Part shown: in pieces, positions 2,789 through 61,201 of the stretch
Layout: each line of letters opens with the position of its first letter
How positions within the stretch are numbered: the stretch's first letter is position 1
IMG/VR virus record: IMGVR_UViG_3300028920_000001
Span: 1 to 64,000 of that record
DNA: 64,000 nt
Direction: 5' to 3' (one strand)
Made by a program: the position numbers and the translations under genes
The notes under the pieces: generated by a model
The model's database searches: none
Told to the model about the DNA's origin: nothing
Seen by the model: only the letters and a program-made list of their open reading frames with translations

Positions 2789-2804
2789 ACGGTACGGTAC
2801 TTAT
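2789..2804. promoter_or_regulatory. Putative bidirectional -10 promoter for leaderless transcripts
   Basis: 16 bp between divergent ATGs; TACGGT (+) and TACCGT (-) lie 6 and 5 nt before the respective starts. Confidence 0.5.
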
Positions 2805-3455
2805 ATGTTTGATTGGAAAAATACCGAAGCCATCATCCCGGCAGTGGTGTCTATCGCTGAACGAGCTGATTCTCTGCGCCAATTATTAGTGGACTTATCT
2901 ATTCAATGTCCAGGGATTAGTGCTACAGTAATACCACAATGGAAACAGAGCCCTAGATCAAATCCTAGATTGGCATTTGAATCGATTACCAAAGGCCTTC
3001 AAGGAATGTCTAGTCCTTGGATATTTTATATGGAGGAAGATATTCAATTATCTTCCAAGTTTGGAGAATTGGTACCGGAAGTATTAAATAAAATACCTGA
3101 TGAATGTGGTGCGGTTTCTTTCTTTTCCCCAAATAAAACAGAACAAAAACTGGTACGATTAAATGGATCATCATTAAATGAAGCTGGAGAACCTTTTACT
3201 TACGCGCAATGTGTGGCTATGAAATTAAAAGTAGCTTTAGCTTGGAAAAACATGATTTTACCTTGGTGGGATGCTGCTCCCTCTGGTAAAAAACGAGCTC
3301 CGGATATGGCACTAGGAGATTGCTGTAAGGATTTAGGATTGAAAATTCTTATTTATTTGCCTAATTTAGTTCAACACCGATGTATAGAATCCGGATTTGG
3401 CCATTCTAATCGTCCTAAGTCGTATACATTTATTGATGATTTGAATAATGTTTGA
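2805..3455 (+). CDS. Putative glycosyltransferase (GT-A, GT25-like), paralog 1
   Basis: Start reassigned to MFDWKN at 2805 to match its paralog. Motifs YMEEDI, D..LG and PNLVQH..SGFGH resemble GT25/GT2-type enzymes. Confidence 0.6.
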   Translation: MFDWKNTEAIIPAVVSIAERADSLRQLLVDLSIQCPGISATVIPQWKQSPRSNPRLAFESITKGLQGMSSPWIFYMEEDIQLSSKFGELVPEVLNKIPDECGAVSFFSPNKTEQKLVRLNGSSLNEAGEPFTYAQCVAMKLKVALAWKNMILPWWDAAPSGKKRAPDMALGDCCKDLGLKILIYLPNLVQHRCIESGFGHSNRPKSYTFIDDLNNV

Positions 3456-4083
3456 TTGGAAAAATACTGAAGCCATTATTCCAGCGGTAGTATCTATTGC
3501 TGAACGAGCCAAATCTTTACAACAATTATTGATAGATTTATCTATTCAATGTCCAGGAATTAGTGCTACGGTAATTCCACAATGGAAAAGCAATCCTAAG
3601 GCTGATCTTAGATTAGCATTTGAATCGATTGCTAAGGGTCTTCACAAAATATCTAGCCCTTGGGTATTTTATATAGAAGAAGATATTCAATTATCTTCGA
3701 GATTTGGGGAATTAGTCCCTGATATTCTAAATAATATGGGTGATGATTGGGGTGCAGTATCTTTATTTTCTTTTAATTCAGATGATGTTCGGATGCTTAG
3801 ATCCGGAATGCATTACTACAGAATAGATTTGATTTATTCACAATGTCTAGTAATGAAATTGGAAGTGGCGAAAGCTTGGGAAAAATCAATTTTACCTTGG
3901 TGGGATAATGCTCCGAAAACTAAAAAAGAGGCTATTGATGCCTCTTTTAGAGAGTGCTGTAAGAATCTTGGATTGAAGGTTTTTGTTTATCTTCCTAATT
4001 TAGTTCAACATCGGCTTCTAGCCTCTGGATTTGGTCTTTCTCATCGTCCGAAATCATATGTATTTATCGATGATCTTGACTAG
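3448..4083 (+). CDS. Putative glycosyltransferase, paralog 2
   Basis: N-terminus near-identical to 2805-3455; YIEEDI and PNLVQHR motifs. Confidence 0.6.
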   Translation: MFDWKNTEAIIPAVVSIAERAKSLQQLLIDLSIQCPGISATVIPQWKSNPKADLRLAFESIAKGLHKISSPWVFYIEEDIQLSSRFGELVPDILNNMGDDWGAVSLFSFNSDDVRMLRSGMHYYRIDLIYSQCLVMKLEVAKAWEKSILPWWDNAPKTKKEAIDASFRECCKNLGLKVFVYLPNLVQHRLLASGFGLSHRPKSYVFIDDLD

Positions 4084-4123
4084 AACTTTCATTTAGTAAG
4101 GTTATATCAAATTGGAGACAAAC

Positions 4124-4489
4124 ATGGCCGAACTACGTAAAATCACCATTCCCGATCTCATCAAAGTTAATGCCTTGGTTGAAGATGAAAAGGGCAATCA
4201 GAAGCGAGAAGTTCAAGATTATACTTTTTACGATTATGTTGGATATTTGATTAATACTCAAGAAGGTTTCAATAAAACTGGACCTGGGATCAGGGCTGGT
4301 GTTCGAATAATGAAAAAATTAAGTGAAGCTAAAGAGTCTGAAGATATGGTAAAATCTATTGTTATAGATGAGCCAGATTGGACTTTATTACAGGAAACTT
4401 CTGAAGAACCTCCACAGGGGTATCCATTTGGACCGACCAGACTTTTATTGTCGTTTTTGGATGCAATTAACGACGCAGAAAAGGTCTGA
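4124..4489 (+). CDS. Hypothetical protein, possibly a tail-associated chaperone
   Basis: ATG at 4124 preceded by GGAG; lies in the structural module. Confidence 0.5.
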   Translation: MAELRKITIPDLIKVNALVEDEKGNQKREVQDYTFYDYVGYLINTQEGFNKTGPGIRAGVRIMKKLSEAKESEDMVKSIVIDEPDWTLLQETSEEPPQGYPFGPTRLLLSFLDAINDAEKV

Positions 4490-4953
4490 TGAGTAACGGT
4501 GGTGGTTCCTGGGGTACTTCCTGGGGATATATCTGGGGTAGTGGAGGTGCTGTCGGTGCTTCCACTCCTTGTGGTTTTGCATTCCCAATTTATCAAATTC
4601 CATTTGGTACTGTATTAGGTCGTGCGGATCTTGATAGATTTACTGGAACCCCGGATACTGGATTTTTAACTCTCGGCACGCAAAGTCCTGGTTTAGTATA
4701 TTTTTCACCGGCTTTACTTGAAGCTCGCCCGAATAATCAAATAGATATTGATAGTTTTGAAATAACTACTCGGGCTTTTGAGATCTATGCCCAACCAAAT
4801 CAAGAAAATAATAGACTGTTTAGATTTGGGCCCAATAGTTTATCTCGCACAAATAATTATTTATATAGATCACAGCCCTCTGAATATACTGCTGTTGGAA
4901 TATTAACTCAGACTTTACCTCCTGGACCAACTGTCGTATACGGAATATTTTAA
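4489..4953 (+). CDS. Hypothetical virion structural protein
   Basis: Coupled to the upstream ORF; W/G-rich N-terminus (GGGSWGTSWGYIWG) as seen in baseplate-associated proteins. Confidence 0.5.
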   Translation: MSNGGGSWGTSWGYIWGSGGAVGASTPCGFAFPIYQIPFGTVLGRADLDRFTGTPDTGFLTLGTQSPGLVYFSPALLEARPNNQIDIDSFEITTRAFEIYAQPNQENNRLFRFGPNSLSRTNNYLYRSQPSEYTAVGILTQTLPPGPTVVYGIF

Positions 4954-4978
4954 CTTTTGATTCAGAGGAATTAGAGAA

Positions 4979-5635: not shown

Positions 5636-5653
5636 TTAAATGTAATTTTATGA

Positions 5654-7537
5654 ATGCATATTGATGAATTAAAGCAATATTTAAATTTAGAAAAGACTAA
5701 ACAAGAATTTGGTGAACCTAAAAATAATAAATCAATAGTATACGTGATTTGTGAGGATTGCCAATTAGACAGACAAATTACAATCCAGTCACTTAAGAAT
5801 AAACTTAGGTTAGATCGGGGGACTCGTTGTAATGCTTGTGGTACAAGATTTTCTTGGACAAATCCTGAAAGAAAAATTAGACAACAGCGAGTTTGGAAAG
5901 ATCCGGAGTATAGAAAGAAACAATCTAAAATTAGGAAGAAACAATGGGAAAATCCTGAGTATCAGCGCAAACAAGCTACTAAGACTGAGGCACGCAAAAA
6001 TGACTCTTCATATCAAGAAAGGATGTCTCGTCAGTCTAAAAAGCAATGGGAAAGGCCTGAATATCGAGAAAATCAGATAGAAATCCAAAAACAATTATGG
6101 AAAACTGAAGAGTATCGAAAAAATCAAAAAGCATTTAAGACTGAGGAATTTAAAAGAGGTCAATCTGTAAAACAGCAACAAGTATGGCAAGATCCTGAAT
6201 ATCGAGAAAATCAATCTGTAAAACAGCAACAAGTATGGAAAAGACCTGGATATAGGAAGCATCAATCAGCAATTCAAAGTCGAATTTGGAATAATCTAGG
6301 ATATCAGGAGCGGCAGTCAAAATTACAAAAACAGGTATGGCAGAATTTTGAATATCGGAAGCATTTTGAAGAAATTTGGGGAAGTGAAGAATATCGAGAA
6401 AAATTATCTAAATCTTTAACAGAAAAATGGAAAAATCCGGAATTTAGAAAAAGAGCTTCTGAAGCTGCAAAAGAAAGGTGGAAAGATCCGGAATTAAGAG
6501 AAAAACTTTCTATTGCAATTAAAAAGATGTGGGAAAGGTCTGAATATCGGGAAAAACAATCACGGGCTCAAAAAAGAAAATGGGAAGATCCTGAGTATCT
6601 AGAAAAAATGGTACAAGCCAGGTCTTCCCAACTCGGAAGAAGATCTTCTATTGAAAAAATTACTGAACAAATTCTTGGTTTAATTGGAGTTAATTATGAA
6701 ATAGAAGTTCCGATCGGTAAATATAGATTCGATTTTTACGTACCCGAACATGATTTATTCATAGAATGTCAGGGAGAATATTGGCATTCTATAGAAGGAA
6801 GACCTGCTCGAGATGCGGCCAAGTTCACTTATTTTGAAAAGGCTCAACCTGATTCTCAGATTTTATATCTTCATGAACGTGAGTTCTTAAATCCTGATTT
6901 AATAAGACGAAAATTGTTACTCTCCATGTTTGGGGACGGATTCAACTTTATTCAAAAAGAATTCAAATTTTCCGATCTGGCTATCCGTAAATTTGAACGG
7001 AAATCTAAAGAACCTCGTTTGTTCTTAAATTCATTTCATTATGCCCAATTCGGCAGGTCAGCTAAAGTAATTTACGGGGCTTATTTGGAGGATGAATTAG
7101 TTGCAGTCTGTAAATTTACTACTCCGGTTAGGAAAGAAGTTGCAACCTCGATGGACTATGCCTATTCAGAAGTCCTGGAATTAGATAGATTCTGTATTCA
7201 TCCGGAATATCAAAAGAAGAATCTTGCTTCTTGGTTTATCTCTCGATGTTCCAAATTAATATTTCAAGAATATCAAATTAAATGTCTGGTGTCATTTGCT
7301 GATTCAACTTATGGACATTTCGGGACGATTTATAAGGCTGCTAATTGGGAAGAGATAGGAAAGATTCGACCTGATTATCATTATGTTAATGATGATGGGT
7401 TCATCCTACATAAGAAAACCTTATATAATCATGCAGTGAAAATGGGTAAGAAAGAGAAAGAATACGCCGAAGAATTTGGATATCGAAAGGTGTTTGGTAA
7501 AGAAAAGATTAAATTTGTGAAAAAGATTCAATTGTAA
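5654..7537 (+). mobile_element. Free-standing homing-endonuclease-like gene: NUMOD3-like repeats + PD-(D/E)xK (Vsr/DUF559-like) nuclease + GNAT/Mom-like domain (Hef-like)
   Basis: More than 15 ~15-aa W..PEYR..QS repeats; RFDFY...IECQGEYWH nuclease motif; C-terminal FL..FHY, ELDRFC, LVSFAD..GH.GTIYKA.NW. Confidence 0.75.
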
Positions 7538-7764
7538 TGAATGTATTTTTCTTCATGATAACGGCTGAAGAATACCTTAAGCATTATTGTAAAGAAAATA
7601 ATATTAATTGGAATAAGCTTACTCGAGCTGAACAATTTATGTTAACTAGAAAAATTCCTTGTACTATTCGTTGTTTTAGAGTGGGTGGACCTGTCGATCT
7701 AGATGAAGATGGGACTTGTCCTGAATGTGGTGCAATTTGGTTAGCTGATGTTATGGAATCATGA
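7537..7764 (+). CDS. Small Zn-ribbon protein ending in the VMES motif
   Basis: CxxxC and CPECG; ends LADVMES*. Confidence 0.65.
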   Translation: MNVFFFMITAEEYLKHYCKENNINWNKLTRAEQFMLTRKIPCTIRCFRVGGPVDLDEDGTCPECGAIWLADVMES

Positions 7765-8814: not shown

Positions 8815-9246
8815 CATAATTTCATTAACTTGACATAATTTGCATTTAGGATGATGCCCTACAAATAAGTCGGCTACAATTTCTTTGCATTCTGGACATG
8901 GATATGAAGTGATTACAAAACCTCCACCACTGACTATGACTTCCAATTCATTCTTATTTTTAATTACCACTACTTTAGATACATCCATTTCATAGTTGAT
9001 TGATAAATCAAGAGTTCTAATTATACGATCATGGATTGTTGGAAATTCCCAGCTTTTGGGTACTATAATATCATTGTTAGGTATGGTGGAAGCTAAATTT
9101 TCTTGAAATTCAACTTGGATTTCCCCGTGTTCATACCAAATTTGCCCTTTTTGGTCTAATCTGTAACCAAATTCATCTAGCATCTTGTAAATTCTATTTA
9201 TTTCTTGATGTGATTGGGTCCAGAGATACTGCATTAGTTTATTCAT
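8806..9246 (-). CDS. Hypothetical protein with a C-terminal Zn site and IMSS tail
   Basis: Start reassigned to MNKLMQ at 9246, which removes the overlap with 9260+; CPEC..H..C..C; ends QVNEIMSS*. Confidence 0.6.
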   Translation of the reverse strand: MNKLMQYLWTQSHQEINRIYKMLDEFGYRLDQKGQIWYEHGEIQVEFQENLASTIPNNDIIVPKSWEFPTIHDRIIRTLDLSINYEMDVSKVVVIKNKNELEVIVSGGGFVITSYPCPECKEIVADLFVGHHPKCKLCQVNEIMSS

Positions 9247-9259
9247 ATTACATTTTAAT

Positions 9260-9583
9260 GTGATTTGTATCAGATGTGGGACCCATCTTTGGATATCTGA
9301 AAATCCGGTCAAATGTCCGTATTGCAAAACCTTAAATTATCCTGCTCCAAAGCCTGAATTCAAATCTCAGACTAGACCTGAATATTACCAAGCTAAACGC
9401 GAAAAATATAGCCCACAGAATCAAATTAGACGATCTCTTCCTCAACCCCCAACGGTTGGGCTCGGAGACGCTGTGGAGATGGTTACCCGAGCTATAGGGA
9501 TTAAACCTTGCGGGGGATGCAAAAAACGCAAGGAGACGTTTAACAGGGCCGTCCCTAATATACGTCGTCCTTGGAGACGTTAG
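9260..9583 (+). CDS. Zn-binding phage protein
   Basis: N-terminal CxxC..CPYC and C-terminal GLGDAV..TRAIGIKPCGGC..R motif. Confidence 0.6.
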   Translation: MICIRCGTHLWISENPVKCPYCKTLNYPAPKPEFKSQTRPEYYQAKREKYSPQNQIRRSLPQPPTVGLGDAVEMVTRAIGIKPCGGCKKRKETFNRAVPNIRRPWRR

Positions 9584-12973: not shown

Positions 12974-15900
12974 ATGGCTAATCCCCTCGGATCTGGCGTA
13001 ACTAGATATATTAATGGTAGGGACAAACAGTTAGGGTCTGTTATTATTCAAAGTAACAAACCTATTCTGGATTCCGAATTAAATCTTGCTCAGTTTGTTG
13101 ATTTAGAAGCTCGAGCTGAAGAAGTAAGGTCAAGAGTACCTTCGGGTTGGCTAATCAATGAAGCTAATCCGATGAATGACTTTGTTACTCATCCAAATTA
13201 TTCGAACTTATTTTTCTTTGGAAATCAGCATGTTAATGAGCTTCGAGATCTTCAGTGGGCAATTGTAAATGGGTGGCCCATACCTGTTACTGCTACTCGG
13301 ACTGGAGCTCCACCTCTTAGTCCGAATAATTTTGATACTTGGAATCGAATTGAATTAAATCCTCCCGGTGGAGCAACCGGTGGAAATAAAGTTGAATTCA
13401 TATTTCTTGAAGCCTGGTTACAACGTATAGATGTTGATCCAGCGCCACCAACTATTGCTCCTGGAAAACCTCAACGAGGATTTCTCTATCGATTTGGAAA
13501 TGTTGAGAGTGGATATTCATATTTACCAGACGACTTAATTGATCCGGACATGAATTTTGAGACTTCTAAGAGAATTCAGATTCAATACCGAATTCGAGTT
13601 ATTCAGAATATCAATCTTTCTCAATATCCTGAAGGGTTTGATCCTACTTTAGTTTTTGCTCAGGGTCCTCTCAGTACTCCGAGTGCTCTTTATTTCACAA
13701 ATATGCGTAAAGAACTCGGTGATCCTGGTCTATGGCGTGCCGGCACTGGTGATTCTGATTTAGTCGGAACAGTAGATGGTTATATTTATGCTATCCCGAT
13801 TTCAGCAGTATTCCGGCGCAATAGTGCAGGGTTCTCTGATACTGGAAATTTAGCAGGTGCATTTAATCGAAATAGTACTGCTACAACCAGAGAAGATGCT
13901 ATTGTTTATTCGAGTGGCCTCACTCTTCCCACCGACATTGCTGATACTGACACTCAATTCACTCTAACTACCATCTCCGGCACTGTGCTAGAGAATATGA
14001 GTTCGTTTGGGGAAGCATACTTTAGAGTCGATGATGAAATAATTCGAATTAGTAATATTAATCAAACGAGCCCGACTTCATTTGTAATTACTTTTGATCG
14101 AGGTCAATTACTAACTACTATCAGGGCCCATAGTGCTGGCAAGGCGCTCAATCTCTATACTGTTCGACCCGATGGGCTGTTTGCTGATCAGGTTGCGAGA
14201 ACTGACATTCTTGATCTTCGTCATTCAGTTGCTGATAAATTCGATTATGATTCCATCCTTAAAACTAATTTAGTTGAGCTTCTTAAGGGTAATTTACGTA
14301 CTGCTTGGAAGAGATTTGGTTCTACTAATACTGCGGGTCCGGTAGTTCTTTATGGTGATCGGATCACTGATGATTCGATCTTTGTTGGTGGTTTATCCAG
14401 GCTTGATGGCCCTAATGGTAACCGGCGAACTTGGTCTGATGCTATCACGACTGAACGGTTAGTAGTTTCTTGTCGTAATCCATCTGATAGTAACGCAATT
14501 GGTGATGATTTAGAAGTTTCAGTCGCTCCTTATAATATTATTGTGGAGTGGTCTAATGCTGATGCCACTAGATTGCCTGGTTCGCGTATTGATAGTGGTG
14601 TGTCTAAATGGTTTAATGGTGATAAGATTAAGATTAATTTAGCTGAATTTCAAGATGGTTTACCAGTAACGGATGCTGATCAAGTCAGGTTCATTACTCC
14701 GGATGAAGATGAAGATGCTGTTTTAATTCATTTTGAGGGAATGATTTCAGATCCTAATGGAGCAAATCCTTCAGTCGCCCCTTATTCAACTTGTCCATCT
14801 GTCACACTTCCGGTATTTTCTTCTGCTCCGACAGGGAATCGAATTCTGAAACATGGGCAAGGTATTACTGTTACTGTTGATGGATCTGGTAATCTCGAAA
14901 TTGAACTTGATAGTGGTACTTCTGGCACAGTTTTCCAAGAATTCCAGGACTGTCTTGATAATTTAGATACGATCACTTCTGATACTGCTGCAGCGTCATT
15001 AATGCACATTCAAGTTGGTGTTGTTTATGGTTCTGGACGTGGCTTATCGCATAAGCCAGATTATGTCCATAATGTGCATTATCGAGGAGATGCTTCTAAT
15101 TCGTCCAAGGTCATGTTACGGCCTGGGCTTAATAATGGGAATCGAATGATTCCTAGTTATGTTAGTTTTTCTCCTTATGTTCAAACTGGCAAGCATCGTG
15201 ACTTAGCTGTTACTTCTGAGGTAATGGTTGATACTGGATCAAAAACTATTAAAGTTCAGCCTTATCGGAATGTTTTATTACCGCCTTTGATTGTTCGAAA
15301 TGGAAATGTTTTGAATTGGGGTAATCTGGCTCAGCCTCAAGGGGCAATGCCGATGTATGATGAGCCTCGAACTACTCTTGTTCATACTTATGTTGATCCA
15401 CTTGATTTATTCTATATCGGGAACACTAATACTCGATACGTAGAAATTCCGTGGGAATATCTTCCTCGGCCTGGACTGCATCACGTTCCAATTATTCCAG
15501 TAACGGGGACAGTGTTCCCATCCGGAATCAATTTCTTGCTGATGTCTAAGACTGGATCAGTTGGAAGTACATCGGACTGGAATAGGAATTTAGTTGCATA
15601 TCCGTCGGCTTCTCCCGGTTACTATGTTGTAACCCCTGTAATTGGGGAAACTTACGGCGATTCATCTTCTTCTACTTCATGTTTCGGACAGAAATATGAA
15701 AATGAGGTATTGCCTACTTTAAGTGGACCATTTAGGGGCATCCAATTCCCGCCGTTTTATGGTCCTGCTCGAATCACTGGTGTTTATCTTCGTGATACGA
15801 CTGGAGCTCTTCCATACCCAACTACTCCAACATCTTCTCCATTCAACAATAATCGACAATTTGTTGGTGGTGTAGGAACTGATATTAACTTACTTAAGGA

Positions 15901-46843: not shown

Positions 46844-46890
46844 TTATATCAATTATACAACGAGCAACTATCAAATTTAACGGAGAATCG

Positions 46891-49266: not shown

Positions 49267-49312
49267 ATCCCGTTATTCTACCGATGATGAACTGTGACTG
49301 AAATGTGAAAGT

Positions 49313-49651
49313 GTGAAATTCGAGCTTGTACATTCCGGTATGAGAAATGTTGTCGATTTGGACACTTCCAGCATTCCCAAAAATAAATCACCTTTAATTA
49401 AATCACAAGAAATCTCTTACATCGGAAGATGCTTAGGATGTAGCGAAATGGATGTTCTGATTGATGGAGCTTGTACAGGTTGCATTGATCTTTATGGAGA
49501 AAAATGCGGGGCTATGTTCCAAAAAATCAGACAAGATCCAAAGTTTGCTCGTCTTTGTTATGAAAAACTTCGGCACGAAGAATCTAAGAAGCAATTCATT
49601 GAATTTTTCGGATCGCAAATCCTCGATGTTGCTACAAGCGGAGTTATTTAG
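49313..49651 (+). CDS. Zn-finger hypothetical protein
   Basis: CLGC...CTGC. Confidence 0.55.
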   Translation: MKFELVHSGMRNVVDLDTSSIPKNKSPLIKSQEISYIGRCLGCSEMDVLIDGACTGCIDLYGEKCGAMFQKIRQDPKFARLCYEKLRHEESKKQFIEFFGSQILDVATSGVI

Positions 49652-50126: not shown

Positions 50127-50158
50127 GATCTAATCTACAATTTGGATATGACTTATCA
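50098..50158. repeat. 15-bp perfect inverted repeat TGATAAGTCATATCC / GGATATGACTTATCA
   Basis: Arms at 50098-50112 and 50144-50158 bracket the -10 box and start codon of 49644-50126. Confidence 0.8.
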
Positions 50159-50178
50159 GTATCTATTATGACAGCTTA

Positions 50179-50868
50179 TTAACTGGCTATTTTCTGTAGG
50201 CAGATTTTCACCAATTCTTCGATTGGCATGTCATCTACTGCTGGTCCTAAGTCCTCGAGAATTTTCTTAGCCTGAGGCTTCTTAAACCCGAGGTCAGTCA
50301 GAGCAGCCAGTGCTTTCTGGTAATTTTGCGAAGCTTCCGGATCGAAAAACGGTTTCGGCTTCGGGAAATCGATGATATGGAATTCTTCTTTAGGCTGAAA
50401 TTCCACCGGATGCATCGGTGCAGGCTGGGCCGATTTCTTAATATCCTTAACAGTAAGCTTCTTCGCTTCTGAGTCTAGAAGCTTCTTTGCTCGATTCCGA
50501 GTTTTATCATTCAAAGATTTTTCAAAGGCCGTGGCTGTAACTGGATCATTAATCAGGCATCCATGATTTACTACGTTGATCATAAAATCAACGTATTCAA
50601 TTTCTTCCATTTCTCGGCTACGAATCCCAATTAGGGAACAATCCATGAAAATCCCGAGGGCTCGATATCCTTCATTGACCTGATTGTGGAAAATTAGAAG
50701 GATCCGTTCGATTGTCTGGACTGCCCATTCATTAGGAGCTTCTACCAAAACTAATTTTTCGATTCCACCAAATGGACCGGGAATAGTCTTGGCGAAGAGG
50801 AAAGCTGCTTTGGCACATCCGAAAGAGGGGTGCTCGGGGCCGATTGCATTAGCTTTGAGTGTCTTCAT
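50179..50868 (-). CDS. Protein with a C-terminal RuvA domain III and an unrelated N-terminal domain
   Basis: KALAALTDLGFKKPQAKKIL.....IEELVK..L matches the RuvA C-terminal domain pattern; no OB or HhH domains recognisable. Confidence 0.65.
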   Translation of the reverse strand: MKTLKANAIGPEHPSFGCAKAAFLFAKTIPGPFGGIEKLVLVEAPNEWAVQTIERILLIFHNQVNEGYRALGIFMDCSLIGIRSREMEEIEYVDFMINVVNHGCLINDPVTATAFEKSLNDKTRNRAKKLLDSEAKKLTVKDIKKSAQPAPMHPVEFQPKEEFHIIDFPKPKPFFDPEASQNYQKALAALTDLGFKKPQAKKILEDLGPAVDDMPIEELVKICLQKIAS

Positions 50869-50905
50869 ATTTCGGGATACGGCCTGTACCCGAACACTTA
50901 CGTCG

Positions 50906-51193
50906 TCACTTGATTATTTCTAGAGATAGGTCTTCCAGCCGGACGCTGACATTCTTGAGAGTGTCATCTTCAGGTACGAACCAATATCCATTAACTAAAT
51001 CGGCCCCAAATTTACATAATCGAATTCCTCTTTTTAGAGATAATCCTAACCATCGTTTGGTTTTAAGATGAAATAAGGCATGGGTATCTTTAAAATCGGC
51101 CATCATCATTGGCTGTTCATTAAATATATCTTCTGCAGTTAATAATATTAGCCGTCCTTTAACCGGGACTATTCCCCAATCTATCGGCTTCAT
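50906..51193 (-). CDS. Hypothetical protein
   Basis: AGTAAAAT 5 nt upstream of the ATG. Confidence 0.55.
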   Translation of the reverse strand: MKPIDWGIVPVKGRLILLTAEDIFNEQPMMMADFKDTHALFHLKTKRWLGLSLKRGIRLCKFGADLVNGYWFVPEDDTLKNVSVRLEDLSLEIIK

Positions 51194-51212
51194 ATTTTAT
51201 TTTACTTTTTAT

Positions 51213-51224
51213 TTGTCCGGACAA
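51213..51224. promoter_or_regulatory. 12-bp palindrome TTGTCCGGACAA in a divergent intergenic region
   Basis: Perfect palindrome 4 nt before the ATG at 51229. Confidence 0.35.
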
Positions 51225-51228
51225 GTGG

Positions 51229-51777
51229 ATGTTAGAATACGACAAATTAATAAATGATCTCTCGAATGAATTTTCGGGTTTTGAAATAATCCCTAAAAAT
51301 CAAAGCATTTTGATGAAAATCATTAATGTTGTCTTGAAGATACTATCATTCGGATTGATGAAAACCTTCATGACTACTTTTGTTACCACAATTGGTAGCA
51401 AAGTATACGTTCCAGCATCTTGGGAAACTGAATGGGACGAAACTAGCAAGATTTCAGTTTTAAGACACGAACGAGTCCATATTCTTCAGAAGAAGAAATA
51501 CTCTTTCATATTATTTGCTATCCTTTATCTCTTTGTCCCGCTTCCAATAGGTTTGGCCTATTTCCGGAAGAAGTTTGAGCAAGAAGCTTACGAAGAGACT
51601 ATGAGAGCCACCGCTGAATTACGCGGTGCGATTTACTTGGATTTGCCTGAATACAAGGATTTCATTATTGGCCAATTTGTGAGTGCCAATTATCTGTGGA
51701 CTTGGTTATTTCGAAAGTCTATAGAATCTTGGTATGACCAAACCAGAGACAAGATTTTACTCGAGGTATCAAAATGA
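51229..51777 (+). CDS. HExxH zinc-metallopeptidase-like membrane-associated protein
   Basis: LRHERVH.LQ...FEQEAY motif with a hydrophobic segment between. Confidence 0.6.
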   Translation: MLEYDKLINDLSNEFSGFEIIPKNQSILMKIINVVLKILSFGLMKTFMTTFVTTIGSKVYVPASWETEWDETSKISVLRHERVHILQKKKYSFILFAILYLFVPLPIGLAYFRKKFEQEAYEETMRATAELRGAIYLDLPEYKDFIIGQFVSANYLWTWLFRKSIESWYDQTRDKILLEVSK

Positions 51778-52238
51778 TTGACGAAATCACCAAAGAAATT
51801 TCGCTGGCCGGTCTAGCGGTAATTGTGATTGCTTGTGTAGCTCTCACTAAAATCGTTCGCAAGATCGTTGAAACCTCAATTCCGGCTTGGAGGAAAAAGG
51901 CTGACGAAAATCATCCGGATAAGACTTATGCCACCAATATGAGTCGGTGGTGGAACCAAGTTATCCTGTACGTCATTCCAGTCACGATTGGACTTCTACT
52001 GGGATTTATTAAGTCCGAATTTATTTTTGGAAAAATTGATACCCTTAGCGGTAAGATGTTTTATGGTGCGTCTGTCGGCTGGATGTCCGGATTTCTGGTT
52101 AAAATATTCTTCCAGTTAATTAAAGAAAAGACCGGGGTAGACGTCTCTAAGGTTGCGGATATGGATCCCAACCCAATGGCCAGTGTTAGTAAAGATGTAG
52201 ATTCTACGTCTGATGATCAGGACAAGGAAGAGGCCTGA
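51774..52238 (+). CDS. Holin-like membrane protein (about three TM helices)
   Basis: Three hydrophobic segments and an acidic tail. Confidence 0.5.
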   Translation: MIDEITKEISLAGLAVIVIACVALTKIVRKIVETSIPAWRKKADENHPDKTYATNMSRWWNQVILYVIPVTIGLLLGFIKSEFIFGKIDTLSGKMFYGASVGWMSGFLVKIFFQLIKEKTGVDVSKVADMDPNPMASVSKDVDSTSDDQDKEEA

Positions 52239-53391
52239 TTGACGGCATTTTGCAGGTCGGACAAAGCGGAATCCGGTCCAACTCCTCTTGTACTTTATCA
52301 AGCTCGGATTGGATGGTATCTCTCTGGCTCGAGAGTGCCCTTTCCTCGTCCTTAAGTTGATTCAGGCGGCGTAAGTACCCCTTGCCATTGGAAAGCTTTT
52401 CCGTGCATTCTTCGGAACCCGGAATGGTTATTTCAACAGAAAGTAAATCTACCCTTTTTTGGGCTGATTGAAATTGATTGAGGATCCTTATACCCTTGGA
52501 TATTCTTTGGATATTTTCAAGGTCTTCGATTTTTGAAATTTGAACATCTTCAATCGGCTTTAATCGAATTATTCTCTTAGCTATATTTTGAAGTTTAATC
52601 CAAACCTTGAGCATATTTTGAAGTCTATCTATCTTATATTGTTTTATTGGAGACGGAATTTTAACCAGCTCAATTTGATTGAGTTTTTGAATTTGATTGG
52701 ATAATACCTCAATCTTGGACATAAATTCTTCGATGGCTAAAATTCTCTCACTATATTCTTCAATAGATTCAAATTGACTATCTAGATCAGATTCGAGTTC
52801 GAGCAGATCATCTAATTTATCAAGTTTACCATCTTTGGCTTTTAACTTTTCAACATTTTTCTCATAGATTTTAGCTTCATCTAAGGCCCGTTTTCTATTC
52901 CTAACGTTGATTAAGATTCCGCTTTGTAATACCTTTAATCTACTAACTTCTGAAATAAAATCAGTAACAGCTGGGCCAGAACGGTCTACTAAAAAGAGAG
53001 GGAAAAATTGTCGGGCATGCCAGGGGTGAATTACATCTGATCCAATCTTAATAGCTTGAAATCCGATATCCTGGATAAAGTCAGTCTGTCCAGCACCAAC
53101 TTTGTCGAGTGGTTTTTCTTTGCCTGGGAGCCAATACCGGTTGACCCCTCTTTCTGCTTTTTCCCATTTTAAACCCCAATCAGATGACTGAAGTTCAACT
53201 GTAGTATATTTTTCCCCTTGACGAACTAGGCTTACAACCGGAATATTTAAAAGAGCCCCGGAGATTGCTCGAATAATGGCACTTTTTCCAATATTAGTTT
53301 TACCGGTTATGCAAGTAAATCCAGATATCTCAAATTGGAGATCCGCAATGCTCTGGAAGTTCTGAATATGAACCTTAATTGAATCAGTCAT
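52204..53391 (-). CDS. sbcC: SbcC/Rad50-like ATPase, N-terminal half ending at the zinc hook
   Basis: IQNFQS, ITGKTNIGKS (Walker A), Q-loop, coiled coil and terminal CPTC. Confidence 0.75.
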   Translation of the reverse strand: MTDSIKVHIQNFQSIADLQFEISGFTCITGKTNIGKSAIIRAISGALLNIPVVSLVRQGEKYTTVELQSSDWGLKWEKAERGVNRYWLPGKEKPLDKVGAGQTDFIQDIGFQAIKIGSDVIHPWHARQFFPLFLVDRSGPAVTDFISEVSRLKVLQSGILINVRNRKRALDEAKIYEKNVEKLKAKDGKLDKLDDLLELESDLDSQFESIEEYSERILAIEEFMSKIEVLSNQIQKLNQIELVKIPSPIKQYKIDRLQNMLKVWIKLQNIAKRIIRLKPIEDVQISKIEDLENIQRISKGIRILNQFQSAQKRVDLLSVEITIPGSEECTEKLSNGKGYLRRLNQLKDEERALSSQRDTIQSELDKVQEELDRIPLCPTCKMPSIRPLPCPDHQT

Positions 53392-55443: not shown

Positions 55444-57231
55444 ATGATACTCCATTTAGAACCTGATGATGTATATAAATCATTCATTTATACCGGTGCT
55501 CCGATTAAAATAGGTGAATTTAGCGCTAAGAAATTACCATTTAAGTGTAAATGTGGGTCAATAAAATTAATAAGAATGAATACCATTACTACTGGGAAAA
55601 GTACAACTTGTGGGGAATGTAGTAAAATTAACTTAAATTACGGTACTAAATTCAACGATCTTATTTACATCGGGCCTTCAATTCGAATCCATCCTCAAAG
55701 TGAAAAAAAATTATTATTTAAATGTAAATGTGGTAAATCTAAGTATATTAGGTTCTTTACAGTAGAGAAAGGTAAAGCCAAGAAATGCGGGGACTGCAAT
55801 TTAACTGTTATTAAAAAGGGCGACAAAATAGGTAATTTTTGGTATGCTGGAAATGAAATTACTGAATATCTAGGAACAATTAAAAAATATCCATTTAAAT
55901 GCAAATGTGGGAAGATAGTGTTTCTTAGTCTAAGAAACACTAAGAAAAATCAAACATGTGGTAAGTGTAATGAAATATTATTGAAACACATGGAAAAATA
56001 TCAAACTTTTGTTTATTTAGGTAAAGATATTCATATCGGACCTTGGTCTAAAACAAAATTGCCATTTAAATGTAGATGTGGGGCATTAAAGTATATTTCC
56101 ATCTCATCTATTACATGTGGAGATACTGTATCATGTACTAATTGCTATCAAATAATTAGTACATGGTATAAAAATAATGTACCAACACTTAAAAAATTAA
56201 AATGTCCAATCTCCCCTAGTCAATTTCCGATAGGTGGCCCAATTCCATTAGAAACAATTAAATTTCGTTCTAAGAGTTATACCTTTCTTTGTCCTATTTG
56301 TGATAGTCAATATAATCCAACTTTAAATGAAATTGTAAGAGGAAAGCGATTAACATGTGGCTGCATATGCAATAAAATTTCAGTTCCTAATAGAGAAATA
56401 AAAAACTTTATAGATTCATTAAATTTGAATTCTGAATTGGAATTCAAATTAGACGGCAGATATTTTGACATTAAATCAGGTAACTTGTTGATTGAATTGA
56501 ATGGAATCCGTTGGCATTCCAAAATAAATTCAAGACAACGTGATACTGAAAAATATTCAATAGCTATGGACAATGACTACCAATTATTGTCCATATTTGA
56601 AGATGAATGGAAAAACAAAAAACAGATATTTAAAAACATTATACAACATAATCTTGTACGCAGTGAGTCCATACTCTTACGACCTCAAAAGTGTGAAATT
56701 TTAAAAGTTCAAAATAAAGAAATCAACGACTTTTACGAAAGAACTCATTATATTGGTAAATGTAAAGCTAAAGTTCACTATGCTGTTATTCATGATTCTA
56801 AAATTATAGCTGCCATGTCTTTTGGTAAGCCAACTCGGCCTACCAAAAGATACGATTGGGAAATAATACGAATAGCAACAGATCCAAATTACCATGTTCA
56901 TGGAATCTGGTCTAAACTCTTGAAATTGTTTATTAAAGAATATAAACCAAAGTCCATTGTGTCTTTTTCAGATAATCGTTTGTTTACTGGAAAAGTGTAT
57001 GAAAAATTGGGTTTCACTTATGATGGAGATGTGAAACCTGATTACTACTGGACGTTAGGAAATAAGAGATTCCATAAATCTAATCTCAGGAAAACTAAAG
57101 AAGAAAAATTAACTGGTTTAACTGAAACTCAGTTAAGAGAAGCCCAGGGATATAAGAAAATTTGGGATTTAGGGAAAAAGAGATGGGTCTATCAATTGAT
57201 AGACCCATCTAATTCCAAAGCCCGCACTTAG
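55444..57231 (+). mobile_element. Hef-like homing endonuclease: Zn-ribbon repeats + PD-(D/E)xK nuclease + GNAT/Mom-like domain
   Basis: Four F.CKCG...CG.C repeats; FDI...IELNGIRWHS...IFEDEW; FYERTHY.G, EIIR.A, SKL, IVSFSDNR..G.VY..LGF, PDY.W, IWDLG. Confidence 0.8.
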
Positions 57232-58194: not shown

Positions 58195-58959
58195 TCACTT
58201 TAACAGGTCTTCGTAAGATATGCCTTCAGTAGATTCGGAGGTCTTTGTTTCAGGATTGGGACTATCATTAGGAGATTGGGACTCTTGATTAAAAAAATCT
58301 GCTATAGCATTAGCATGGGAGCCACTTAATGGCTCTGGTAAATCATCCGGTCTTTTATTTGGATCTAATATTTCTTTAGGGTCAATCCTATTTCTATTAA
58401 CTGCTGGAGGCATTCCGTGACTAAGTCGGCCCTGTTCGTCAGCTGAGCCTGAAGAATATCCGCCATCACCTCCAAATTGGCTACTTCGGTCATCTTTTAC
58501 TAATTGACGTTGAAAACGAATATCTCCATTAGTTTTCTGAAGGTCATCATACTTGAGTTTGACTATTTTAGCGGTTTCTTGAATATCTAAGAGTTCAACC
58601 TTGAGTTTAACGATAGTTTCAGCCTCATTTTTTAACATAGAGGCTGCGACCGCTTTTTTAATACCCTCTGATGGTTGCTGACGAACTATAGTATCATCAG
58701 CTAATTTTTCTTGCATTTTGAGATCTAAGTCAAGTTCGGATTGTTTGACTTCAATTCTTAAATCTCGTTCTCGTTTCTTAATTTTTTGAAGATAATACTG
58801 AACTCGATTGAGATAACTTCGACACTGAGCTATAGATTTCTGGAGATAAATAAATCCGTATTGAGGTTGAGTCGGATCTTCTACTAATTCAATTTCATAT
58901 CCAGCAATTTCATTTAATATCTGGTCTAATTGTTCTTTAGAAAACACCTCTTCGGTCAT
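58195..58959 (-). CDS. Coiled-coil protein with an acidic tail (possible recombination mediator)
   Basis: Long heptad region; ends SYEDLLK, similar to the SSB tail. Confidence 0.5.
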   Translation of the reverse strand: MTEEVFSKEQLDQILNEIAGYEIELVEDPTQPQYGFIYLQKSIAQCRSYLNRVQYYLQKIKKRERDLRIEVKQSELDLDLKMQEKLADDTIVRQQPSEGIKKAVAASMLKNEAETIVKLKVELLDIQETAKIVKLKYDDLQKTNGDIRFQRQLVKDDRSSQFGGDGGYSSGSADEQGRLSHGMPPAVNRNRIDPKEILDPNKRPDDLPEPLSGSHANAIADFFNQESQSPNDSPNPETKTSESTEGISYEDLLK

Positions 58960-58965
58960 GCTGAA

Positions 58966-59307
58966 TTATACATCTGATTTAAGCTGCTTTTCTCTGTGTT
59001 CGATGACACTTTTATGATTTGTGCTGCTGGCTTTAATTCGATCATTGGCTTCATCAACTGAAATAGCTCCTCGAGCGATAGCAGTATCAATAGCTGCCTT
59101 AGTTACAATTTCGCTAGCTTTTAAAGTGAGCAAATGAGCTTCTTCAAGAGATGTAGAGGTTGAACTGCCACTTGCATATACAAATTCAACGTTCATAGAA
59201 ACGAAATGATGAGCTTTCAGTCCAGCTTTATGGGTATCAAATCCGTGTGATATGGTAGCAGATCTCACCACCACTTTTACGTCTTCTTCTTCTTTTGTTT
59301 CACTCAT
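58966..59307 (-). CDS. Hypothetical protein
   Basis: TGTAAACT 5 nt upstream of the ATG. Confidence 0.6.
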   Translation of the reverse strand: MSETKEEEDVKVVVRSATISHGFDTHKAGLKAHHFVSMNVEFVYASGSSTSTSLEEAHLLTLKASEIVTKAAIDTAIARGAISVDEANDRIKASSTNHKSVIEHREKQLKSDV

Positions 59308-59414
59308 GATTAAGTTTACATTTTTCGAATTTGTTTTCTTTTGAAATAATTATAACATAATCTTCAGATTTCCCTACTGACCATCCGGCGAGCAGGCGTA
59401 TCGATGGTAGAGCT

Positions 59415-59813
59415 TCAACTGTTCATCACTTTATGGACTGTATAATTCTTTTTAAGATTAGTAATCGTATTATGTTCATGAACGATCCAAACGATACCTA
59501 ACCAGCCCCAACACATTAAACAAAGATAAAAGGGTTTGCCTATATAATTATTTATATAAGATTCCATAATTGATGAATCTAATCTGATATAGATACTAAC
59601 ATAAATTAAGATAGCTACACCGAAATAAATTGAGCTAATAATACTCCAAGTCCAAATATTAGTGAAAAACACGGTTGTAAAAGATACGGTAAATGGAATT
59701 GCCATCCATGCGGTATAACAACTAAATTCAGCTTTGGCTACTTTAATTTCATACTGAGATTTAATTTTCTCAATATCTGTTTGATTTGGTTTAACCAGAC
59801 CTGAACTACTCAT
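59415..59813 (-). CDS. Three-TM membrane protein with VMNS tail
   Basis: Hydrophobic helices; ends TVHKVMNS*; architecture similar to 60022-60561. Confidence 0.65.
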   Translation of the reverse strand: MSSSGLVKPNQTDIEKIKSQYEIKVAKAEFSCYTAWMAIPFTVSFTTVFFTNIWTWSIISSIYFGVAILIYVSIYIRLDSSIMESYINNYIGKPFYLCLMCWGWLGIVWIVHEHNTITNLKKNYTVHKVMNS

Positions 59814-59814
59814 G

Positions 59815-60021
59815 TCAGTCTTCCATAATCATAGTAACAAATGCTTCTTTTAAATAAATTTTATATAATTTGGGTGAATCTGCTTCTCGACACCAAGGGC
59901 AAATTTCATCCAACGGAATAAGATCACCATCCAAAGCACACGGTTTACCACAACGTTGACATCCAATTACTCCACTAGCAATGGAAATTGGTCTGGCATG
60001 TTGAGGATCATAATGTAACAT
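59815..60021 (-). CDS. Small Zn-ribbon protein with IMED tail
   Basis: CQRC...CPWC; ends FVTMIMED*. Confidence 0.65.
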   Translation of the reverse strand: MLHYDPQHARPISIASGVIGCQRCGKPCALDGDLIPLDEICPWCREADSPKLYKIYLKEAFVTMIMED

Positions 60022-60561
60022 TCAAGATTCCATGATTTCAGCTACAAATGACTCTTTTTTCAGTCTAGAAATTCTATGGTGCAATATTATGAGCCAAGGA
60101 AATGATACTAACCAAGCAACACAGGCTAACATGATGAACGTGTATTCTGGGAGTTTTTTAATGATTGCAATTTTAGATCGGAAAGATTGATTTATTCTAG
60201 TAATTCGAAAGATAAATGAAAAACTCCACGCTATTCCTATTACACAAATAATTGGCGTTATCCAAAGACTGGGGTTTGTTTTTACCATAAAGAAATGATT
60301 GATGATTGGAGTTGCCATTGATCCTACGGTAGCTGCGACAGGAGTCATCCACATTCGAGAAAATGATCTATAAATCCGTTGAAATTTTAAATCTTCCAAC
60401 ATCTGTGCTGGAAAAGAACGGTTAAGAATCTGAACCAAATTTTGCATTTGATTCGTAAATTCAGTACATGATACTCCCATACTTTTAAGTGCCTTATTAT
60501 ATTGCTTCGTTAAGAGTTTTTGATTTTTTAGATAGTCTTGAATGATTTTTTCTTGGTTCAT
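60022..60561 (-). CDS. Membrane protein with IMES tail
   Basis: About three TM helices; ends FVAEIMES*. Confidence 0.65.
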   Translation of the reverse strand: MNQEKIIQDYLKNQKLLTKQYNKALKSMGVSCTEFTNQMQNLVQILNRSFPAQMLEDLKFQRIYRSFSRMWMTPVAATVGSMATPIINHFFMVKTNPSLWITPIICVIGIAWSFSFIFRITRINQSFRSKIAIIKKLPEYTFIMLACVAWLVSFPWLIILHHRISRLKKESFVAEIMES

Positions 60562-61007
60562 ACTGAAGAAGTCCAGGTATTAGGAATTGGATGATGTTCA
60601 ATTTGAATGCCTGCTGCTTTTGCTGCTTCGAAAATTCGTTCATCTCGATAAAACTCACCATAAACAACTCGTTTGACTCCCGCATTACTTAACATTTTAA
60701 AGCATAACCAACAGGGAGAAGCCGTAACATATAAAGTTGAATTTCGAAGTCGGGTCCCATTTGCTGCCGCTTGAGCAATAGCATTAGCTTCAGCATGAAT
60801 GGTTCGAACACAATGACCATCTTCCATCATATGACCAACTTCATCACAATGTGGAAGTCCCTTGATGCTGCCATTATATCCTGTACTTAAAATGGATTTG
60901 TTTTCTCCGATAATTACACAACCTACTTGTTTTCGATCACAGGTCCCGCGTTCAGCCACCACAGTGGCAATCTTCATGAAATAGTCGTCCCAGCTAGCTC
61001 TTGACAT
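60558..61007 (-). CDS. dCMP deaminase (ComEB/DCTD family)
   Basis: WDDYFM, R.TC...VG, TGYNG, HAEANA and PC..C motifs. Confidence 0.95.
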   Translation of the reverse strand: MSRASWDDYFMKIATVVAERGTCDRKQVGCVIIGENKSILSTGYNGSIKGLPHCDEVGHMMEDGHCVRTIHAEANAIAQAAANGTRLRNSTLYVTASPCWLCFKMLSNAGVKRVVYGEFYRDERIFEAAKAAGIQIEHHPIPNTWTSSV

Positions 61008-61015
61008 AGATTAGA

Positions 61016-61201
61016 TTACATTTCCATGATGAAATTAACGATATATGTTTGCCAGTATTCAATGGCTTCTGGAATGGAAAAAGCAGGAGGGCCTTCATGA
61101 TAGCATTCTTCATTAAGACATCCGACGAGAAAGAAGTGCCTTCGATGCCAGACATCACATTTTTGCCCACAGATAGGACAAGGTCCTAAATTTGTTTTCA
61201 T
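61016..61201 (-). CDS. Small Lar-like Zn-ribbon protein with IMEM tail
   Basis: L.PCPICG...V.C...C...EAIEYW pattern as in restriction-alleviation Lar-like proteins; ends IVNFIMEM*. Confidence 0.55.
   Translation of the reverse strand: MKTNLGPCPICGQKCDVWHRRHFFLVGCLNEECYHEGPPAFSIPEAIEYWQTYIVNFIMEM

Follow-up and report, generated by a model that had tools for sequence, protein, structure and literature searches.

A TGTAnnnT promoter-like box that may produce leaderless genes in a 427-kb phage

How can a gene be expressed when almost nothing separates its start codon from a putative promoter element, and when two divergent genes share a spacer of only 13 to 16 bp? The question arises from the window analysed here, the first 64 kb of a 426,960-bp phage genome with terminal repeats. 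The original prediction was that a (T/A)GTAnnnT or TAnnnT box lies 5-6 nt before many start codons that lack a Shine-Dalgarno (SD) site, that four compact divergent pairs carry such a box on each strand, and that these boxes are -10 elements without a consistent -35, so that the mRNAs would begin at the start codon. Our analysis confirms the observation for all eight single sites and for three of the four pairs, and far beyond chance. The leaderless reading is also supported, although with four corrections given below and with transcript starts that remain inferred from sequence.

We first asked whether the position of the box is special. In the whole genome, GTA begins at -12 from the first ATG in 74 ORFs and at -13 in 35, that is in 109 of 537 ORFs, against about 8 per background position. 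T is present at +6 in 78-86% of cases and T precedes the G in 57-70%. With T at +6 required, 117 of 553 genes, about a fifth, carry the box, 17-18 of them in the window; these counts rest on our own gene calls, which are crude. Of 396 first ATGs 73 carry GTAnnnT, against 6 of 1706 internal ATGs (binomial p about 1e-99). Counting from the motif rather than from the genes gives the same peak, whereas ATA/TTA/CTAnnnT and TATAAT show none. Thus the G is essential, and the first correction is that the defining feature is GTA, preferably TGTA, rather than a generic TAnnnT, which is not enriched. We found no -35 element, every upstream column carrying less than 0.1 bit. Nor is the box an extended -10 of the TGnTATAAT type, a mode of recognition that had been suggested, because TG abuts TA directly.

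The eight single sites originally listed all carry nGTAnnnT with G at -12 or -13, leaving 5 or 6 nt between the last T and the ATG, and none has a strong SD. On the plus strand, box TGTAATTT lies 5 nt before the ATG at 5654 of a Mom-like/HNH-like 627-aa gene (5641-5656), and CGTAAAGT lies 6 nt before the ATG at 26361 of a 167-aa ORF (26347-26363), whose orthologue in one relative, G1, also has the box. Box TGTAAAAT lies 6 nt before the second ATG, at 38888, of DNA polymerase A (38874-38890, plus), and the box is kept before polA in most relatives. The plus-strand site at 41968 belongs to a divergent pair described below. On the minus strand, each with a 5-nt spacer, TGTAGATT precedes a 160-aa ORF starting at 50126 (50124-50139), AGTAAAAT a 95-aa ORF starting at 51193 (51191-51206), whose G1 orthologue also has the box, TGTAAACT a 113-aa ORF starting at 59307 (59305-59320), and TGTAATCT a dCMP deaminase gene starting at 61007 (61005-61020), whose orthologue in a further relative, G3, also has the box.

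Five further sites in the window had been missed. Box TGTATTTT lies 5 nt before the ATG at 7555 of a 69-aa ORF (7542-7557, plus), and GGTAGGAT, a weaker box without the T before G, lies 6 nt before the ATG at 21948 of a 1464-aa ORF (21934-21950, plus). Box TGTACTTT lies 6 nt before the ATG at 49049 of a dATP triphosphohydrolase-like gene (48366-49049; box region 49047-49063, minus), whose G3 orthologue has the box plus a GGAG leader instead. Box TGTACATT lies 5 nt before the ATG at 49340 of a 103-aa ORF (49327-49342, plus), and TGTATAAT lies 5 nt before the ATG at 58959 of a 254-aa ORF (58957-58972, minus), where it overlaps the end of the upstream ORF.

Do the compact divergent pairs carry a box on each strand? 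Three of them do. At 2788(-)/2805(+) (2786-2807) the 16-bp spacer has overlapping boxes AGTACCGT (2794-2801, minus) and GGTACGGT (2791-2798, plus), and a PHROG profile aligns from residue 1 of the 2102-2788 protein. At 35641(-)/35658(+, GTG) (35639-35660) the 16-bp spacer contains the palindrome TGTAAAATACA, which gives a box on each strand; the 65-aa plus-strand ORF, 35658-35855, is conserved in 4 relatives. At 41954(-)/41968(+) (41952-41970) the spacer is 13 bp, with boxes TGTATAAT (41955-41962, plus) and TGTAGGAT (41961-41968, minus); both ORFs have relatives, and the small minus-strand ORF, 41649-41954, is conserved in the related phages. The fourth pair, 9246/9260 (9244-9262), is not supported. 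It has only TTAAAAT and TTACATT, without the G, neither ORF is conserved in the relatives, and ORF 9260-9583 has only one weak hit to a PHROG family of unknown function (E 2.3e-6). This pair is not beyond chance and is not part of the system. In the genome as a whole, four divergent spacers of 16-17 bp are GTAnnnTAC palindromes.

Does the box act on transcription or on the ribosome? Its distribution favors a promoter. The box is carried by 49/134 directon heads (37%) but by only 3/147 overlapping internal genes (2%; p 4e-15), and the same holds in G1 (27/104 against 1/67) and G3 (25/96 against 0/64), while SD motifs remain common at overlapping junctions. Only 1 of 117 box genes has GGAG/GAGG, against 113 of 436 others. 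Position -1 is a pyrimidine in 59/72 (82%) of the -12 class against 216/436 in other genes (p 2e-7), and the start codon is ATG or GTG, never TTG; a pyrimidine at -1 is combined with a purine at +1. Moreover, the box appears to function independently of its distance to the codon. Sense boxes at -18 to -35 of non-box genes number 32 against 9 antisense, many followed by GGAG. In the window, box TGTAAAAT lies 25 nt before the ATG of the SNF2 helicase with GGAGG in between (29567-29595, plus), giving a predicted leader of about 13 nt, and two boxes, TGTATTCT and TGTAATTT, lie 33 and 21 nt before the ATG at 43999 (43997-44033, minus), a second leadered variant. Both polA in L010/L011 and the G3 orthologue of 48366-49049 keep the box but add a leader of about 13 nt with GGAG(G). 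Boxes also lie 12-21 nt before tRNA-Met, tRNA-Gln, a UCA-anticodon tRNA and tmRNA genes.

The box is conserved in related huge phages. In relatives of 50% and 57% GC, 79/416 and 53/399 ORFs carry GTA at -12/-13, and box status is shared by orthologues (odds ratio 15, p 2e-7; odds ratio 6.3, p 4e-4). Across 13 sigma-bearing contigs of 34-63% GC there are 75 box starts against 12.3 at control offsets. All these phages keep a 219-aa ECF-like sigma factor, here at 44101-44760 (plus), which is the candidate reader of the box and whose own start is SD-led and has no box. Pfam detects Sigma70 region 2 (Sigma70_r2) only. The protein is 52-62% identical in 5 of 5 relatives, as conserved as polA, whereas a second sigma is only 27-32% identical. 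A structural model of it, which is mediocre (pLDDT 67), predicts an ECF-like sigma2 fold and a small C-terminal helical domain. The best structural matches of its N-domain are ECF sigma2 domains, including E. coli sigmaE region 2 bound to -10 DNA (4lup: Z 7.7, rmsd 2.8, 83 residues aligned) and the engineered sigmaE region 2 bound to GTAAAA (5or5: Z 7.1), although Z values under 8 can reflect common helical arrangements. No RNA polymerase genes were found in the phage by Pfam.

We therefore propose, as more likely than not, that the box a-w-T-G-T-A-a-a-n-T is a single-element, -10-type promoter private to this clade of huge phages, most likely read by host core RNA polymerase carrying the 219-aa sigma. 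In this view, opening at the box would place the transcription start 12-13 nt downstream of the G, which in about a fifth of the genes is the A or G of the start codon, so that the mRNA would have no leader (at most 1-2 nt) and no SD site and would be translated by the leaderless route. Because the core TAnnnT is self-complementary at its second and sixth positions, a GTAnnnTAC palindrome (or a shared GTAC) forms a box on both strands, and a 16-17-bp (or 22-bp) spacer could thus drive two divergent leaderless genes. The motif, its geometry, distribution and conservation, and the fold and conservation of the sigma come from our analysis directly, whereas the transcript start, which sigma reads the box, and the mode of translation are inferences. 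In particular, by analogy with phiEco32 gp36, where the G sits at -11, the start could lie 1-2 nt before the AUG rather than on it. The link between sigma and box is correlative only. Furthermore, the box carries only about 10 bits and is not over-represented genome-wide against a third-order Markov model (268 against 267 at score 9 or more); hundreds of non-start copies exist, so something else must add specificity, or spurious starts are tolerated. Nevertheless, each sequence-based test that could have refuted the reading came out in its favor, from the sharp positional enrichment, which had been named beforehand as a check, to conservation together with the phage sigma, and the geometry also fits a -10-type element.

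Could the box instead be read by another sigma, or not be a promoter at all? The most serious alternative, which we nonetheless consider unlikely, is that it gives leaderless mRNAs but is read by the host's housekeeping sigma or by the phage's second, full-length sigma (396 aa; genome 65859-67049), which has regions 2, 3 and 4. The core TAnnnT is indeed the generic sigma70-family -10 signature, and leaderless genes in Actinobacteria and Deinococcus use the housekeeping -10 box (PMC6028130). However, neither TAnnnT without G nor TATAAT peaks, sigma70-type bipartite matches are at the shuffle level (66 against 64 +/- 8), and the same box is kept in phages of 34-63% GC, which presumably have different hosts. 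Moreover, the 396-aa sigma is the poorly conserved one while the 219-aa sigma tracks the box, and the absence of a -35 fits a sigma without a recognisable region 4.

Still less likely is that the box lies inside a transcribed leader as a non-SD translation initiation signal, bound by the ribosome or by a phage factor. It does occupy the usual ribosome-site zone (-13 to -6) at a narrow distance from the start codon and it excludes SD motifs, but it is almost absent from internal, overlapping gene starts, where SD motifs persist, whereas in the GeneMarkS-2 scheme non-SD ribosome sites precede all genes (PMC6028130). Its occurrence 18-35 nt upstream with an SD in between, its presence before tRNA and tmRNA genes and the pyrimidine at -1, which fits a transcription start, all argue against this reading, and the palindromic 16-17-bp spacers would force both promoters into the opposite coding regions. 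No IF1, IF3 or S21 gene is in the phage, and the box has no known complementarity to the conserved 16S 3' tail. The least likely possibility is that the box is the operator half-site of a phage DNA-binding regulator, its position near starts reflecting repression or activation. Some copies do form perfect palindromes of the TGTAnnnTACA type, which is typical of dimeric regulators, but most are single, oriented half-sites with no TAC partner, positions +7 and +8 being unconserved, and palindromes occur only where two genes diverge. The 1-nt-sharp distance to the start codon, the strand orientation and the pyrimidine at -1 are not expected of an operator.

How does this box relate to known promoters? 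The closest precedent is the phiEco32 gp36-dependent middle/late promoter, a single element (tAATGTAtA / AATGTA) centred at -11.5 with no -35 consensus and a start 6-8 bp downstream of the element, which is compatible with 12-13 nt from the G (PMC8948821, PMC12276001). The core a-w-T-G-T-A is nearly the same, and in phiEco32 it is read by a small, divergent phage sigma on host core polymerase. Here, however, the box also needs T at +6, is locked to the start codon, and occurs about 100 times in a 427-kb genome rather than 6 times in 77 kb; leaderless transcripts are not mentioned in these two phiEco32 papers. A phmmer search of the 219-aa sigma against PDB sequences found nothing, so that homology to gp36 is not shown.

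The leaderless genes of GeneMarkS-2 'group C' bacteria (Actinobacteria, Deinococcus-Thermus) have a Pribnow box 6-8 nt before the start of first genes in operons, with SD sites used for the remaining genes and 25-50% of operons affected (PMC6028130). The fixed short distance and the enrichment at first genes are shared, but the present box sits in a virus, requires GTA and is kept across phages of very different GC content, and is thus unlikely to be the host's housekeeping signal. The divergent pairs resemble the symmetric bidirectional promoters of Warman et al., where starts 18 or 23 bp apart around overlapping -10 elements are the commonest bacterial bidirectional layouts (bioRxiv 10.1101/2020.01.31.928960). 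GTAnnnTAC likewise pairs position 2 of one -10 element with position 6 of the other, with predicted start separations of 17-18 bp for the 16-17-bp spacers and 23 bp for the 22-bp spacer with a shared GTAC. Here, in contrast, both transcripts would be leaderless, so that the whole intergenic region would be the promoter, and extra G/C flanks extend the palindrome. The arrangement is frequent in this genome (4-5 cases at 17 bp or less) but not in G1 and G3, whose tightest pairs are 20-36 bp.

ECF (group 4) sigma factors, such as E. coli sigmaE with its GTC-type -10 DNA, are of similar size to the 219-aa sigma and have a similar GT-led -10 motif, but ECF promoters are bipartite with a conserved -35, and region 4 is not detectable by Pfam in the phage protein. 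Finally, T4 gp55 late promoters (TATAAATA) are also -10 only and are read by a small phage sigma with region 2 only. Their consensus is different, T4 late mRNAs are leadered, and gp55 needs the sliding-clamp coactivator; the gp55 open complex 7d7c matches the model of the 219-aa sigma at Z 5.5.

Our analysis of the complete record, a genome of 426,960 bp with direct terminal repeats, 40% GC and good readability under the standard code, indicates that the box seen in the window occupies a sharply defined position with respect to gene starts. A megablast of 9 kb against the phage collection gave no match, so that the genome has no near relative there, and we worked from a simple codon-usage-based set of 553 ORFs. 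Since these gene calls are crude, the key tests were also run without them. Relative to the first ATG of each ORF, the trinucleotide GTA begins at -12 in 74 ORFs and at -13 in 35, against about 8 at other positions. When ORFs were selected on GTA alone, T follows at +6 in 78-86% of cases and T precedes the G in 57-70%, and the spacer after the last T is 5-6 nt. The version independent of gene calls gives the same peak: among all GTAnnnT copies in the genome, an ATG opening an ORF of 60 codons or more lies at distance 12 in 64 cases and at distance 13 in 38, against about 8 at other distances. By contrast, ATAnnnT, TTAnnnT, CTAnnnT and TATAAT show no peak, so the G is the defining base and a generic TAnnnT is not enough. 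The box is carried by 18% of first ATGs and 14% of first GTGs, but by only 0.2-0.5% of internal ATG, GTG or TTG codons. With T at +6 required, 117 of 553 genes are box genes, 17 of them in the window, to which 41954(-), dropped from our gene set, should be added. A Bacteroidetes-type TAnnTTTG was not enriched, and a search for a -35 element by column information and by k-mers found nothing, no upstream column carrying more than 0.1 bit.

The original prediction, that boxes of this kind lie immediately before many genes and on both strands of four very short divergent spacers, is real and strongly non-random as an observation. All eight of the single sites it named are confirmed, as are three of the four divergent pairs (2788/2805, 35641/35658 and 41954/41968). 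The fourth pair, 9246/9260, has only TTAAAAT and TTACATT; its ORFs have no relatives in the related phages, and one has only a weak hit to a family of unknown function.

Several independent lines of evidence point to a start signal that acts at the level of DNA rather than to a ribosome site. Box genes make up 37% of directon heads and 32% of genes lying 0-20 nt after a same-strand neighbour, but only 2% (3/147) of genes that overlap their upstream neighbour, where SD-like motifs remain at 50% (Fisher p 4e-15). Two complete relatives, G1 and G3, of 393 kb (50% GC) and 363 kb (57% GC), give 27/104 against 1/67 and 25/96 against 0/64. This is the pattern used by GeneMarkS-2 to separate the promoter boxes of leaderless genes (its group C) from ribosome sites (PMC6028130), and the localized box with its narrow spacer distribution follows that pattern as well. 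Moreover, in the -12 class the base before the start codon is a pyrimidine in 59 of 72 genes, against 216 of 436 other genes (p 2e-7), the first base is always A or G, and TTG starts are not associated with the box, which gives indirect support to a transcript beginning at the start codon. A strong SD is found in 1 of 117 box genes against 113 of 436 others.

The box also appears to work at other distances. In non-box genes, sense TGTAnnnT at -18 to -35 occurs 32 times against 9 antisense, often followed by GGAG, and examples in the window are 29567-29595 and 43997-44033. Across orthologues the box is retained while the leader changes: polA is box plus 5-6 nt plus start in most relatives, but box plus about 13 nt with GGAGG in the related loci L010/L011, and the G3 orthologue of 48366-49049 is likewise box plus a GGAG leader. 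In the present genome polA has tandem ATG ATG at 38885-38890, of which the box geometry and the orthologue N-termini favour the second (38888) as the start. Finally, the box sits 12-21 nt before several non-coding genes, namely tRNA-Met in G1 and G3 at exactly -12, tRNA-Gln at -21 in both, a UCA-anticodon tRNA, and the G1 tmRNA. Over 88 such genes there are 10 boxes at -25 to -10 against 8 at -70 to -26, which is suggestive, not strong.

What could read such a box? Pfam searches of the genome (Rpb2_6, Rpb1_2) found no multisubunit RNA polymerase, although very divergent phiKZ-like enzymes could be missed, and a search for a T7-type enzyme also returned nothing but is uninformative because its control gave no hit anywhere. 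Searches for IF3, IF1 and S21 genes found none. Two sigma factors were found. The 219-aa protein at 44101-44760 has Sigma70 region 2 only (Pfam Sigma70_r2, E 2.3e-8, above the cut-off), with no region 4 hit even at E of 1, while a 396-aa protein just outside the window (genome 65859-67049, minus strand) has regions 2, 3 and 4 and has TGTA boxes about 29-35 nt upstream of its start. The 219-aa sigma is 52-62% identical in five of five related genomes, as conserved as DNA polymerase at 55-60%, whereas the 396-aa one has only 27-32% matches. An AlphaFold model of the small sigma, with mean pLDDT 67 from a six-sequence alignment, places its N-domain closest to ECF sigma2 domains, the top matches being E. 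coli sigmaE region 2 bound to its -10 non-template strand (4lup: Z 7.7, rmsd 2.8 Å, 83 residues aligned) and an engineered sigmaE region 2 bound to GTAAAA (5or5: Z 7.1). T4 gp55 matches at Z 5.5, and the conserved C-terminal four-helix domain (residues 144-211) resembles sigma28 region 4 only weakly (Z 4.7). These Z values are modest, so the sigma assignment rests mainly on the Pfam hit. Foldseek E-values were all above 0.01. A tblastn of the sigma gave one distant uncultured 485-kb phage (26% identity) with no annotation.

The sigma gene itself is SD-led and box-free in the present genome (G0) and in G1, which fits a cascade in which another promoter type makes the sigma first. The annotated box genes are replication and nucleotide-metabolism genes: polA, dCMP deaminase, a dATP triphosphohydrolase-like gene and a Mom-like gene. 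Box genes are spread over the genome, but are sparse at 160-220 kb and absent from 400-420 kb, where the ORFs are very large.

Nine related loci were found through polA and 19 through the sigma, and they span 34-63% GC. G1 and G3 show the same positional peak, in 79/416 and 53/399 ORFs, and box status is shared between reciprocal-best-hit orthologues (odds ratio 15, p 2e-7; odds ratio 6.3, p 4e-4). Over 13 distinct sigma-bearing contigs there are 75 box starts against 12.3 at control offsets. More distant relatives of the sigma (contigs L073 at 43%, L075 at 36% and L076 at 29% identity) have too few genes to say whether the box changes with the sigma. In G1 and G3, box position +5 is G in 55-60% of cases (TGTAanGT), against 25% in the present genome, which could be co-variation with the sigma or a compositional effect.

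Genome-wide, four divergent pairs have 16-17 bp between start codons, 2788/2805, 35641/35658, 93005/93023 and 242476/242494, and each contains GTAnnnTAC, which forms a box on both strands. In addition, one 22-bp spacer (117948/117971) shares a GTAC core, and one 13-bp spacer (41954/41968) has partly overlapping boxes. If starts lie at the start codons, the 16-17-bp spacers put the divergent starts 17-18 bp apart and the 22-bp spacer puts them 23 bp apart. In E. coli and other bacteria, 18 bp is the commonest separation of divergent starts, because positions 2 and 6 of the two -10 elements pair with each other, and 23 bp is one of several further separations at which divergent transcription is also increased (bioRxiv 10.1101/2020.01.31.928960). 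The layout is therefore a known one, while what is new is that both transcripts would be leaderless, so that the promoter is the entire intergenic region. The tightest form is not conserved, since G1 and G3 have box-box pairs only at spacers of 20-51 bp.

The closest precedent is phiEco32, whose sigma gp36 directs E. coli core polymerase to middle and late promoters with a single element, tAATGTAtA (AATGTA centred at -11.5), with the start 6-8 bp downstream and no -35 consensus (PMC8948821, PMC12276001). The present logo, a/g-w-T-G-T-A-a-a-n-T, is very similar and is likewise the only conserved element. In phiEco32 the G is at -11 and is the first unpaired base, while here it would be at -12 or -13 if the start is the start codon, so a leader of 1-2 nt cannot be excluded. 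A phmmer search of the 219-aa sigma against PDB chain sequences, in a copy not confirmed to include the gp36 chain, found nothing at E up to 1, and the Foldseek and VIA lists do not show gp36; we therefore do not file the protein as a gp36 homologue. Jumbo phages with mapped transcriptomes differ, in that phiKZ showed no leaderless transcript (PMC8244752) and AR9 has leaders of 26-491 nt (PMC5312081). The middle and late transcripts of P23-45 are reportedly leaderless (PMC3018760), although we do not count this as evidence. A full-text search on leaderless transcripts in huge phages returned nothing relevant.

Could the box instead belong to some other class of signal? A non-SD ribosome binding site, as in the group B pattern, should precede all genes including the internal genes of operons, and the near absence of the box from overlapping internal genes in all three complete genomes speaks against it. 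The original prediction had also allowed for an extended -10 mode, but in promoters of that type (TGnTATAAT) the TG lies one base upstream of a TATAAT-like hexamer, whereas here TG abuts TA directly and neither TATAAT nor TAnnnT without the G shows a positional peak. As for the hosts' housekeeping sigma, matches to the sigma70-type bipartite consensus in the window are at the shuffle level (66 against 64 +/- 8), and a signal held constant over 34-63% GC argues for a phage-encoded reader. The 219-aa protein is ECF-like in its predicted fold but fails the ECF promoter criterion of a bipartite promoter with a conserved (AAC-type) -35, there being no upstream information and no enriched k-mer.

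Thus the interpretation offered in the original prediction, of leaderless mRNAs begun at a -10-type box, is supported, surviving every test that we could run, provided that the G is taken as the defining base, that the extended -10 mode and the 9246/9260 pair are set aside, and that a leader of 1-2 nt is allowed for. We propose that the system combines three known things, a phiEco32-like single-element promoter for a phage sigma, leaderless first genes in operons, and symmetric bidirectional -10 elements. The position of the box, its distribution among genes and its conservation come directly from our sequence analysis; that the transcript 5' end coincides with the start codon, that core polymerase with the phage sigma starts there, and that initiation occurs on both strands of the compact spacers are inferred, and the link between sigma and box is correlative. 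Moreover, the box has only about 10 bits and is not over-represented genome-wide against a Markov model, only its position relative to starts being special. Either many spurious starts are tolerated or further determinants exist, perhaps the A-rich spacer and the Y-A/G start, a cofactor, or DNA state.

If confirmed, this would be a large, phage-encoded leaderless regulon of about 100 genes per genome, tied to a phage sigma factor and conserved across a clade of huge phages. It gives a simple rule for calling gene starts and promoters in these poorly annotated genomes (TGTAnnnT, then 5-6 nt, then ATG or GTG), it offers a compact orthogonal sigma/promoter pair and a 16-17-bp bidirectional promoter for synthetic biology, and it allows a test of whether phages use leaderless mRNAs to become independent of host ribosome-site preferences. 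It also extends the phiEco32 AATGTA promoter type and the symmetric -10 bidirectional layout to a new setting. A bolder reading, which we regard as doubtful, is that a whole clade of 130-436-kb phages, spanning 34-63% GC and therefore probably different hosts, runs a private expression channel in which one conserved ECF-like sigma reads a minimal TGTAnnnT box positioned so that transcripts begin at the AUG. In this view about a fifth of the phage genes would be freed from any host-specific ribosome-binding signal, which could allow expression to continue in diverse hosts, or while SD-dependent initiation is shut down, and the palindromic boxes would give the smallest known two-gene control regions (16-17 bp).

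The genome carries 37 tRNA genes and a tmRNA, at 75-140 kb, 195-197 kb and 215 kb, including a tRNA with anticodon UCA (ARAGORN 'SeC') at 80541-80615, while G1 has 45 tRNAs plus a tmRNA and G3 only 4. Because of the UCA-anticodon tRNA we considered recoding of TGA. At 183-226 kb there are gene-poor stretches of 1-3.4 kb where several reading frames at once lack TAA and TAG, and reading TGA as sense raises ORF coverage there from 0.45-0.48 to 0.76-0.92. However, the overlapping open frames argue against recoding and suggest odd composition instead, although we have no explanation for these stretches.

Within the window, three consecutive giant ORFs (1549, 1424 and 1464 aa) at 12974-26342 have no Pfam family; the first has only weak PHROG tail or tail-fibre hits, and the third starts with a weak box. 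Two paralogous large proteins, at 5654-7537 and 55444-57231, combine PHROG HNH/homing-endonuclease-like families with a C-terminal Mom-like/GNAT domain and may be a DNA-modification function. At 34000-53000, terminator-like hairpins are about twice the shuffle expectation (28 against 13 +/- 4.5), which, together with 135 directons for 553 genes, points to many very short transcription units.
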